Source: Eutreptiella sp. 'Long Island Sound 2002' (lineage: Eukaryota; Protista; Euglenida). Taken from it: 64,000 nt of DNA. Below the pieces are notes generated by a model that made no database searches, was not told the DNA's origin, and saw only the letters and a list, made by a program, of their open reading frames with translations. The position numbers and the translations under genes are program-made. Positions 666-10,032 of the stretch are shown one piece after another. The first letter of the stretch is position 1. Each line of letters begins with the position of its first letter. The stretch covers positions 4,216,001 through 4,280,000 of the forward strand of contig OZ038378.1 of the NCBI GenBank assembly GCA_964036045.1. Direction: 5' to 3'.

Positions 666-2368
666 GTGCTGATCGGGCACTCTGAGCGCCGTGGTGAGTT
701 CGGGATCTTCCCCATGGACAACAACGACACACTGGCCATCAAGCTCAAGTACATCCTGGACGCTGGCATGAGCTGCGTGTTCTGCATTGGGGAGCCCAAG
801 GAGATCCGTGAGAAGGGCCTGGATGCCGTGCTTGCGGAGATGGACGTGCAGCTGTCGCAGATCTACAGCCTGCTCGATCCCGAGAAGGTGTGCCTGGATG
901 TTGTTCGTGCCCCCAACTCTCCATGTCTCAAATGTCGGCCCCGGTGGTTGGTGCTATGTGATTTGAGGTTGCTTGCACTTTGGCTGTCGGTGTGCCATCT
1001 TTGCCATGGGGTGCGTTGCAGATCCAAACATACTATTGTGTTGGTGACGCGTTGTGTATACACGCGCGGGTGCACGCGCTACCGCCCGTAGTGGTGTTGT
1101 GCCACACACATGATCCTTGGGGCCTTCGGCGCTTCGGGTCCTTTGTTCCTTCTTTGTGTTCAGTCGTCATGTCCTCAGGCAGGTTGCGCCGGTTTCGAAC
1201 CAGAGATGCATGGGGCGGAGCTGTCGGGCGCGGTAGGGCACGCGAGCATGCATGTGTGTGCTTGTGCGCTGTGGGATGGTTTAGTGCGGTGCGTTTGTGG
1301 CGATACGTCCATATGGGGTGGTCAGGATGGTGGGGAGGGGTCCCTGCAGGGGCAAAGAACTTCGGACTGATGAGTTGAAGTGGTGCAGCAGGAACGTAGG
1401 AGTTGGACCCTGCAGCTTGTGCCTGCCTGGCATGGAATCGGAGGTGTTTGAGGTGATGAGAGACAACATAACAATGACCTGGATCGCCCCTCCACTGTGG
1501 GCCCCTCCCTGGCGGAGACAGCGGCTGTCAGGCCAGTATGGGTTGCCTGAAAAGTTGCGAGTTGTCAGCGACCCCCGAAGACCTGGTCACAGCAAAATGT
1601 CCTCCTTCCATACGAACCCCAGGGGTGGGCATAAGAAGGGGTCAGTCTGGGGGTGTATGTATGTAAACCCACAGGTACACGTTGGAGTAGTACACGTCAG
1701 CACCCTTTCAGCCTCAGTAGCCCCTGGTTTGGAAGGGAAACACTCCAATTTAGGGATGGGTAAGGCCAGAGTGGCAGAAAGTAGCTTCGCGTGTGCACTG
1801 CACTCAAAGTCAAAGGCACTCTCTCGATTATCTCTTCTCTGGGGATGGGTTTGGCTGTACAAGGCACACACCACCACTTCGGCCCCTGTAGTTCTGTAGT
1901 TGATTGTCGAACTGCAGCAGGTATTTGTGTAATGTGCATCGGAATCTTTGGGCGTTGCCCATTGAGGTCACACCAAAATGGCTTGTCTTGTAGTTGCGGC
2001 TTGTGCAGTGGACCAGAGTGACCAAGTGCAAACCTTGTGTCCTCTGGTATTGGAGCGGTGTGCGAGTGTCTCCATTGCAACAGGTGGTCATCGCGTACGA
2101 GCCCGTCTGGGCCATCGGCACCGGCCTCACGGCCACCCCGGACGACGCGCAGGCCACGCACGCGGGCATCCGCAAATTGATTTCTGAGAAGGCCTCCGCA
2201 AAGGTCGCCGAGGCCATCCGCATCCAATACGGTGGCTCGGCCAACGCCAAGAACGCCCCAGACCTGTCGGCCCAGCCGGACATCGATGGGTTCCTTGTTG
2301 GCGGTGCTTCGCTGAAGCCGGAGTTTGCGGACATTGTGAAGGCCATCTCCGGCGCCAAGGACGCGTAA
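666..2368 (+). CDS. TPI: Triosephosphate isomerase copy A, partial: exon 2 666-887, exon 3 2084-2368; exon 1 not in window
   Basis: Exon 2 encodes VLIGHSERR...CIGE...DPEK and exon 3 encodes [14 protein letters not shown]...YGGS...[14 protein letters not shown]. Boundaries are ctgcag|GTG at 665/666, AAG|gtgtgc at 887/888 and caacag|GTG at 2083/2084, with TAA at 2366-2368. Confidence 0.93.
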
Positions 2369-8600: not shown

Positions 8601-10032
8601 TTGCTGTAGGTGCTGATCGGGCACTCTGAGCGCCGTGGTGAGTTCGGGATCTTCCCCATGGACAACAACGACACACTGGCCATCAAGCTCAAGTACATCC
8701 TGGACGCTGGCATGAGCTGCGTGTTCTGCATTGGGGAGCCCAAGGAGATCCGTGAGAAGGGCCTGGATGCCGTGCTTGCGGAGATGGACGTGCAGCTGTC
8801 GCAGATCTACAGCCTGCTCGATCCCGAGAAGGTGTGCCTGGACATTGTTCCGTTGTTTGCACACGTCCCGCATCCAATACTGTGTCTTTTCTTGCTGGTT
8901 TGGAGAAATTGCATGACATAAGGCGTCCCGGCTGCATCTGCTCAGCTGTTGTTGTATGCGGCGGTGTGGCTGTGGACTCCATTGAGGGATTGTGTCGGTA
9001 GTTATCAAAGTCCGCAGGAAGGGGACTACGGCTTGTTTTATGCGCCAACCAGGTCTCTGGGGTGGCCCTATTTTTCTTTGCCTCTTTGGGGCAATGCAGA
9101 GTGGAAGTGCATTTTCTGTACCCATGAGGCAGAACGTCACGTCATTTCCCTTGGGGTTATTTCAGCCGATCATTACGCCCCCCAACCCCCGCAGGGCTGT
9201 GCTTAAGAAGGCAGAATTTTTTTTTTAATGACAGCCCTTAAGGACAGCCCCCAGGGACCACCTACCGCCAACCGCCACCAACCGCCAACCACCAATCGCC
9301 AACCACCAACCACCGCCAACCGCCACCAACCGCCAGCCGCAACCGCCAACCATTGAAGTAGAGAAGGTCCCATGTTTCTGTTGGGGTTACGAAGGCCCCC
9401 CGTACAGTCTGAGGCGTATTGTATCCTGTGTTGTGCATTGCATTGGAACGCACGTGGTGTCCCCAGCAACAGACATATTGCGTATTTTCTTGCTGGTTTG
9501 TAGTAATCCCATGAGTTTGACGAGAGTTTTGTGTTTGTCACGTATTTTTTGCTGCTGAAGAGAATGGCGAAGGAAGTCGGAGAAAACGCCGTGTCAAATA
9601 TGCAGACGAGGCTGCGCAGAAACTTCACCGCTCCATTGTTTCAAGATGATACCAGCAAAACCGTAGCAGAACAGCACTTCATGCCTTAGCCCTGCAACTG
9701 TTTCCCCACAAAGCATTTTGCCTCCTGCTTCGTCTCCATTGCAACAGGTGGTCATCGCGTACGAGCCCGTCTGGGCCATCGGCACCGGCCTCACGGCCAC
9801 CCCGGACGACGCGCAGGCCACGCACGCGGGCATCCGCAAATTGATTTCTGAGAAGGCCTCCGCAAAGGTCGCCGAGGCCATCCGCATCCAATACGGTGGC
9901 TCGGCCAACGCCAAGAACGCCCCAGACCTGTCAGCCCAGCCGGACATCGATGGGTTCCTTGTTGGCGGTGCTTCGCTGAAGCCGGAGTTTGCGGACATTG
10001 TGAAGGCCATCTCCGGCGCCAAGGACGCGTAA
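5685..10032 (+). CDS. TPI: Triosephosphate isomerase copy B, 259 aa: exons 5685-5957, 8610-8831, 9748-10032
   Basis: The catalytic motifs GGNWK, GHSERR and [11 protein letters not shown] plus YGGS and LVGGASL are intact. Both introns are phase 0 and GT-AG (5958-8609, 8832-9747). The exons give 91+74+94 codons. There is no N-terminal extension and no PTS1. Confidence 0.97.
5971..5982 (+). repeat. Short telomere-like (TTAGGG)2 just downstream of the TPI intron-1 donor; recurs in copies C-G (e.g. 30800-30815)
   Basis: gggattagggttagggt(c/tag) is present in all six copies that have exon 1. Confidence 0.7.
5985..7326. mobile_element. Non-autonomous TIR element (~1.3 kb) at the 5' end of TPI-B intron 1
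   Basis: The ends are accgagctgg...ccagctcggt. The interior is an A/T-tract repeat with no credible ORF. The element is absent from copies C, E, F and G. Confidence 0.6.
9262..9352. repeat. Degenerate (AACCGCC)n microsatellite in TPI-B intron 2
   Basis: Runs of ccgccaac/ccaccaac units, preceded by tgacagcccttaaggacagccc. Confidence 0.85.

Follow-up and report, generated by a model that had tools for sequence, protein, structure and literature searches.

Near-identical exon blocks between unrelated introns in a tandem triosephosphate isomerase array of Eutreptiella sp. 'Long Island Sound 2002'

The 64,000-nt stretch considered here (the window; positions 4,216,001 to 4,280,000 of contig OZ038378.1, assembly GCA_964036045.1, referred to as C1:4216001-4280000 of the 2.28-Gb genome) originates from the euglenid Eutreptiella sp. 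'Long Island Sound 2002' and was analysed together with the 30 kb upstream of it. It covers part of a tandem array of genes encoding triosephosphate isomerase (TPI), in which the exons of all copies are nearly identical even at silent sites, whereas the introns between them occur in versions that cannot be aligned with each other. Among 12 gene copies, the 11 of the array and one dispersed paralogue on contig C5, four versions of intron 2 and three of intron 1 were found, none related to another, while the exons differ by no more than 3%. Judged from the sequence, homogenisation is confined to the exon blocks. The array probably consists of old unit types, the exon blocks of which are held identical by short, DNA-templated conversion tracts that are limited by homology.

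Identical exons and unrelated introns

According to a Pfam TIM profile scan of the whole genome the array comprises 11 three-exon TPI genes in tandem on the plus strand (C1:4192676-4272502). Every gene consists of exons of 273, 222 and 285 nt, all in phase 0 and separated by GT-AG introns, and the reading frames are intact, with no stops in the exons of any of the 11 copies. Matches above the cut-off were obtained for exon 1 (profile positions 1-85, E 2e-14), exon 2 (profile positions 88-146, E 2.6e-9) and exon 3 (profile positions 158-244, E 5.9e-34). The catalytic Lys, His and Glu motifs are present in the exon translations, including GGNWK and GHSERR, and the predicted product is a triosephosphate isomerase of the cytosolic type (PF00121). 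Protein-level checks and Pfam scans were run on the separate exons, and the synonymous divergence (dS) was summed over single exons.

The array starts with the five units of the A class, namely A1-A4 upstream of the window (C1:4192676-4212599) and copy A, followed by the singleton B (window positions 5685-10032), a gap of 20 kb and the five units of the C-G class (30514-56502). The units of the A class are mutually 98-100% identical over their full length, each with private variants, and are separated by spacers of about 3.0 kb, so that the unit recurs every 5.7 kb or so. Since the A-type structure is present five times with private variants, copy A is neither a lone oddity nor an obvious chimera. 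Introns of the same class differ by 1-5%, are fully alignable and carry only small indels.

Over all 11 copies only 8 of the 780 coding positions are variable; seven of these variants are silent and three are CpG transitions. Exon identity ranges from 99.3 to 100% for every pair of copies and dS within the array from 0 to 0.034. No coding difference is fixed between the classes, the mean number of pairwise coding differences being 2.9 between classes and 2.2-2.4 within them. The sole amino acid change of the array was detected in copy G (exon 1 position 174). Copies C and E, which are not adjacent in the array, share a silent change at the end of exon 1, the last base of which is A instead of G (window 30786 and 43321; CAA before the GT of the intron), and this change weakens the donor-site consensus. 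A first-pass annotation made from the window's sequence alone had claimed that exons 2 and 3 of copy A match the other copies also at synonymous sites, and that exon 3 of copy B carries a single silent change. Both claims are confirmed (Table 1), the latter being a private G>A at exon 3 position 186 (window 9933). Exon 1 position 93, a variant common to both classes, was considered as proof of exchange between them and was given little weight, since the genome is depleted of CpG and the position is a CpG/TpG site. The window-wide observed/expected ratios of CpG (0.63) and TpG (1.39) suggest that methylated CpG has decayed, and CpG transitions make up many of the array variants.

The introns and spacers present a different picture. 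Smith-Waterman local alignments of the intron interiors of the A and C-G classes scored at the level of shuffled sequences (z -0.8 to 2.1), and the spacers of the two classes likewise align at shuffled-sequence level. The A-class introns 1 and 2 gave no blastn match to the introns of B-G. In the alignments and in a sensitive blastn search (word size 7, reward/penalty 1/-1, both strands) the residual similarity between intron versions was restricted to short stubs at the intron ends, one inverted piece shared by B and the C-G class, and low-complexity repeats. The lengths that the first-pass annotation had reported for intron 2 (1196 nt in A, 916 nt in B and about 1190 nt in C-G) were reproduced, the C-G copies measuring 1185-1218 nt. 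The same applies to its observations that intron 2 of A has only the first 19-20 nt and the last 16 nt in common with B-G and that the intron 1 acceptor of A is unrelated, with about 5 nt in common. Its statement that B and C share only the ends of intron 2 holds for about 78 nt at the 5' end and about 80 nt at the 3' end, but a piece of 109 nt (9529-9637) is also common to B and C-G, in inverted orientation and at 88% identity.

In searches of the genome the A-class intron 1 was found solely in the five array copies, the A-class intron 2 proved to be single-locus apart from a repeat of about 70 nt, and the C-G intron 1 occurs only in B-G. One repeat element accounts for 405 of the 1218 nt of the C-G intron 2, and one repeat for about 185 of the 916 nt of intron 2 in B. 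When the repeats are removed the introns are still unalignable, so that transposons are not the main cause of the differences between them. Near-identical introns do not reappear once repeats are taken out, and this possible refutation of the finding thus fails. Insertion of transposable elements as the main source of intron turnover, one of the two explanations put forward initially, is not upheld, since the interiors are mostly single-locus sequence. What remains of the idea of a fast interior turnover by insertion and deletion of such elements is a contribution of structural turnover, which was seen as the inversion, as a local duplication in intron 1 of B (around 7990-8240) and as two independent element insertions.

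A more general form of this idea regards the units as young duplicates, with exons that are alike because little time has passed, and with interiors and spacers that are replaced very fast by deletion, insertion, inversion and transposons. Fast replacement is suggested by the comparison of B with the C-G class, where an identity of 95% in intron 1 contrasts with an intron 2 that is unrelated over about 70% of its length and contains the 109-nt piece in inverted orientation. It would also agree with the insertion of a 1.1-1.4-kb element twice independently at one site of intron 1, with the 405-nt and about 185-nt repeat pieces within the versions of intron 2, and with the C5 paralogue, which shares single-locus 3' spacer at 75-86% identity with the C-G class and no intron interior. 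However, the introns within a class are fully alignable, which implies a turnover too slow to erase two introns and the flanks at a dS of 0.01. Furthermore, alignable non-coding DNA with only 56-79% identity between unit types lies beside exons that are 100% identical and cannot be young, and the interiors consist mostly of unique sequence rather than transposable elements. It seems unlikely that this scenario accounts for the array.

Selection at the level of the protein together with selection on codon usage, acting without any exchange of sequence, might likewise keep exons similar. TPI is usually highly expressed, and the GC content at third codon positions (GC3) is high in the array (0.82-0.83). 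However, dS amounts to 0.10 between the array and the dispersed C5 paralogue and to 1.15 between the array and an older paralogue at C1:171.6 Mb. Synonymous sites of these genes hence do evolve, and selection alone fails to explain the frozen exons of the array. Moreover, the first 130 nt of the 3' untranslated region (UTR) and 13-20 nt of intron, all of them non-coding, match as well as the exons. We consider an explanation by selection without exchange extremely improbable, and the early judgement that selection alone would be insufficient is supported by the dS values of the paralogues as well as by the contrast between the adjoining non-coding DNA (56-79%) and the exons (100%). The GC3 of the array, compared with 0.70 in the unconverted paralogue, fits biased conversion, but codon bias also predicts it.

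Block edges, mosaic units and the template of exchange

The edges of the shared blocks were mapped by comparing the unit classes. Upstream of the ATG the homology between classes extends over about 20 nt (13 nt in A1), and in the 5' flank any sequence common to the A and C-G classes is limited to the last 30-40 nt or so before the ATG. The 5' edge coincides with an AG common to the classes, 12-13 nt before the ATG, or is found 7 nt further upstream. In intron 1 the homology covers 13 nt at the donor end and about 5 nt at the acceptor end, in intron 2 about 20 nt and 16 nt, respectively. These stubs are partly kept even in the old paralogue, indicating that splicing constraint also acts on the intron ends.

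On the 3' side the class block ends about 130 nt after the stop codon. Identity within this proximal 3' UTR (128/130 for A vs C, 130/130 for A vs F) is on par with that of the exons, whereas A and C agree at only 95 of 168 positions (56%) past a 64-nt indel, including a 99-nt patch at 72%. The difference between exons plus proximal UTR and the distal UTR of this pair is highly significant (Fisher p = 1e-60). At the mismatch rate of the distal UTR about 77 synonymous differences would be expected, and 2 were observed. Any similarity between the classes stops about +283 to +350 after the stop codon. In the pairs A vs C and B vs D, a segment is thus far more alike than the homologous DNA adjoining it, with sharp boundaries, as is characteristic of gene conversion. 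A deletion of 6 nt in the 3' UTR (about +77 to +82) is common to D, E (window about 40782 and about 46237) and the C5 paralogue. Either it has persisted as an old polymorphism, or microhomology caused it more than once.

Such a pattern might also be produced during assembly, if units were chimeric or if a consensus of many copies was written over the exons, and short-read polishing can indeed erase small differences between near-identical repeats. But polishing cannot raise an identity of 56-79% to 100%. Furthermore, the A-class and C-G-class unit types are each present in five tandem copies with private intron and exon variants, and the C5 paralogue keeps 20 differences over the same exons, which excludes a wholesale erasure. 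An artefact of this kind is very unlikely.

The units are mosaics. Copy B combines an intron 1 of the C-G type with a private intron 2 and with exon 3 and 3' UTR of the A type, its 3' end (9732-10338) being 99.8% identical to that of A (2068-2674) over 607 nt. Compared with D, the 5' flank of B is 75-80% identical and exon 1 100%. Within intron 1 the repeat insert is 69-88% and the remainder 94-100% identical. Exon 2 is again 100% identical, the interior of intron 2 is at chance level, exon 3 reaches 99-100%, and the 3' UTR 98% for about 116 nt before it drops to chance level. The presence of several identity levels in one pair of units indicates repeated exchanges of different ages, and the youngest layer always includes the exon blocks. 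Copy F contains introns of the C-G class, but the bases at +11 and +12 of its intron 2, and that at one diagnostic site of the 3' UTR, are those of the A class; one of these sites is a CpG. It returns to the C-G state exactly at the end of the class homology. The A-class bases in the stub of F together with this switch back suggest a DNA tract that halted at the limit of homology. In both B and F adjacent segments have incongruent histories, a further hallmark of gene conversion.

How identity is distributed, where the blocks end and that the units are mosaic was observed directly; from this we infer gene conversion as the process and DNA as its template. According to the explanation we favour, at least three old unit types (A class, B and C-G class) would exist, with introns and spacers that diverged past alignment by substitution as well as by indels, inversion, local duplication and repeat insertions. 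Three short blocks of homology would have remained competent for recombination. Block 1 (roughly 306 nt) would consist of exon 1 with about 20 nt before and 13 nt after it, block 2 (roughly 247 nt) of exon 2 with about 5 nt before and 20 nt after it, and block 3 (roughly 431 nt) of exon 3 with the 16 nt before it and the first 130 nt or so of the 3' UTR. Copies would overwrite each other's blocks again and again by short DNA-templated conversion tracts, and a tract would be unable to pass the point where donor and recipient cease to be alike. Limitation of the tracts by homology would explain why the homogenised zone stops so close to the splice sites, at a distance of between a few and 20 nt, and differences specific to a class would accumulate solely at the extreme block edges. 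Within a class, recent tandem duplication or unequal exchange presumably made whole units alike as well.

The first-pass annotation had proposed conversion confined to exons, possibly templated by RNA or cDNA. Homogenisation of exon blocks is retained, while an RNA or cDNA template is not needed and is mildly disfavoured by the stubs, the variants in F and the absence of intron loss (0 of 12 copies). In this alternative, spliced TPI transcripts or their cDNAs would act as repair template, by cDNA conversion or RNA-templated break repair, for one exon per event with the introns kept, and would have served all exon blocks of the array and, on one occasion, a copy on a different chromosome. The homology between unit types does approximate a mature mRNA plus short stubs, hugging all four splice junctions. 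It begins at or just before the shared AG, even in A1 with its otherwise unique upstream DNA, and the similarity between classes is over by about +283 to +350 after the stop codon. A TPI paralogue on contig C7 lacks introns 1 and 2, the footprint expected of cDNA recombination, and a cDNA donor was likewise proposed for fungal ribosomal-protein genes because their dS is far below intron divergence (bioRxiv 10.1101/751792). However, 13-20 nt of intron lie within the identical blocks, and the A-class bases of F at +11 and +12 are themselves intronic. The conserved 3' region measures about 300 nt, yet homogenisation between A and C-G covers its proximal 130 nt only. In addition, homogenisation has evidently happened repeatedly, and still both introns persist in all 11 array copies and in the C5 paralogue. 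A transcript-derived template is therefore judged to be quite unlikely.

Several points weigh against conversion by homology-limited DNA tracts between old unit types. The comparison covered a single genome, so that the old age of the unit types is presumptive; the classic proof would be a clustering of the paralogues by species. The intron interiors retain no residual similarity, though the distal 3' UTR aligns locally at 72%; with interiors so blank, simple old divergence may be insufficient and structural replacement may be needed as well. Several of the few informative variants are transitions at CpG and can arise more than once, and the support for DNA tracts from shared sites amounts to about three sites in copy F. 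Finally, consensus polishing can over-homogenise near-identical repeats.

Table 1. Coordinates of the TPI gene copies and their parts (window positions; plus strand)
Feature	Position	Strand	Remarks
Copy A, exon 1	-354..-82 (82-354 nt before window start)	+	
Copy A, exon 2	666..887	+	74 codons, phase 0; 222/222 identical to B-G
Copy A, intron 2 (A-class version)	888..2083	+	1196 nt, GT-AG; confined to the 5 A-class units except for a repeat of ~70 nt
Copy A, exon 3 with stop codon	2084..2368	+	284-285/285 identical to other copies
Copy A, 3' UTR/flank	2369..2674	+	first ~130 nt common to all copies; up to +306 shared only with B
Copy B, exon 1	5685..5957	+	91 codons from ATG; 100% identical to D
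Copy B, intron 1	5958..8609	+	2652 nt; C-G type with 1359-nt repeat element and local duplication
Copy B, exon 2	8610..8831	+	
Copy B, intron 2 (private version)	8832..9747	+	916 nt
Copy B, exon 3	9748..10032	+	private silent G>A
Copy C	30514..33716	+	exons 30514-30786, 31992-32213, 33432-33716
Copy D	36411..40705	+	exons 36411-36683, 39013-39234, 40421-40705
Copy E	43049..46160	+	exons 43049-43321, 44469-44690, 45876-46160
Copy F	48504..51626	+	exons 48504-48776, 49935-50156, 51342-51626
Copy G	53375..56502	+	exons 53375-53647, 54806-55027, 56218-56502

Paralogues and repeat elements

The dispersed, single paralogue on C5 has its introns at the array positions and retains both of them. It shares single-locus 3' spacer DNA with the C-G units at 86% and 75-77% identity over about 2.3 kb, which indicates that it arose as a DNA copy. 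Both of its intron interiors are unrelated to every version in the array; the paralogue possibly descends from a mosaic unit type that is gone from the array, or intron interiors are replaced faster than spacers. C5 was also considered as a homeologous syntenic locus. This was rejected, as the 70 kb around the C5 gene and the 154 kb around the array have only the TPI blocks and the spacer of about 2.3 kb in common.

The paralogue on C7 (C7:39855001-39865000, minus strand) is about 80% identical and is devoid of both array introns. It contains one intron of about 6.8 kb at a new position, inside the equivalent of array exon 2, and by its gene structure represents a case of intron loss and gain within the TPI family. 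Two tandem intronless TPI genes were detected at C2138:43001-49308, on a contig of 49 kb with a GC content of 44.5%. Their products are 40-60% identical to the array protein, and the genes may be of contaminant or foreign-type origin.

A second family with the pattern of the array was sought among the other TPI loci (C20, C223, C4 and C5), which are too diverged, and by a scan for GAPDH genes, which revealed more than 100 dispersed pseudogene-like fragments and no clean paralogues. The GAPDH fragments occur genome-wide, correspond to the C-terminal domain (profile positions 4-98) and nearly all contain an in-frame TAG; they look like a gene piece that was spread by a repeat family.

Of the repeats in the introns, the family of 1.1-1.4 kb, with at least 6000-8700 candidate copies in the genome, is represented in intron 1 of B (5984-7342, 1359 nt) and of D (36710-37830, 1.12 kb). 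Both elements have the identical insertion point, inside a short stretch of TTAGGG-like sequence at the beginning of intron 1. They are 82% alike and the one in D is 99% identical to copies elsewhere, which points to independent insertions, that of D being recent. TTAGGG-like repeats in the same orientation flank all six other inspected copies of the family, suggesting that the element is specific to telomere repeats. An element of 405 nt was detected in intron 2 of C (about 32793-33197) and at the same position in D-G. Its candidate copies in the genome number at least 817, with an identity of about 80%, and it looks like a short, non-autonomous element. The repeat of about 185 nt in intron 2 of B (about 9192-9374) has a low-complexity core rich in CCAACC, occurs also upstream of the C5 paralogue and has at least 3300 candidate copies.

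Comparison with known systems and implications

The process itself is already known, and the TPI array adds a sharp example from a new lineage. Trypanosoma brucei belongs to the sister lineage within the Euglenozoa. Its promoter-less tandem arrays serve gene dosage and undergo gene conversion within arrays (PMC1855330). In some of these arrays related coding sequences are likewise embedded in distinct, unalignable types of UTR and intergenic sequence, and copies split by remodelled spacers behave differently there as well (PMC1855330). In contrast to the TPI genes, however, the trypanosome genes are intronless, and copies with remodelled flanks usually escape homogenisation (PMC1855330). The TPI exons are homogenised across unit types and across the 20-kb insertion.

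In duplicated fungal ribosomal-protein genes concerted evolution is limited to the coding regions, and the authors infer a cDNA donor (bioRxiv 10.1101/751792). They resemble the TPI array in that dS is far below the divergence of introns and flanks, in being highly expressed housekeeping genes and in the confinement of homogenisation to exons (bioRxiv 10.1101/751792). The fungal pairs, however, are mostly dispersed and have one intron, whereas the 11 copies of the TPI array stand in tandem and have all kept their two introns. Whereas cDNA is the proposed donor in the fungi, the variants in the intron stubs of the TPI genes point to a DNA donor.

A further tandem family is formed by the stomach lysozyme genes of ruminants, in which the exons reportedly evolve in concert and the introns divergently, as described by Irwin and co-workers. 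The lysozyme introns are said to be still alignable, whereas the TPI interiors defy alignment and the homology breaks off 5-20 nt from the splice sites. In mammalian gene pairs long-lived conversion affects sharp segments with raised GC3, and the converted fragments span introns and exons (PMC2720389). Sharp segments, a raised GC3 and a presumably long persistence of conversion are features which the TPI array has in common with them. The introns are thus converted too in the mammalian pairs, while they are excluded in the TPI array.

The array represents an unusually sharp natural case of islands of homology that confine gene conversion, with edges mapped to 5-20 nt. The locus is suited to asking whether DNA or RNA serves as repair template in a trans-splicing protist; if true, a transcript template would amount to a 'proof-reading' of highly expressed multi-copy genes. 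Editing with Cas9 ribonucleoproteins has been published for Euglena gracilis (PMC13142649). For the gene families of euglenids, the pattern means that trees based on exons and dating by dS will badly underestimate the ages of duplicates.

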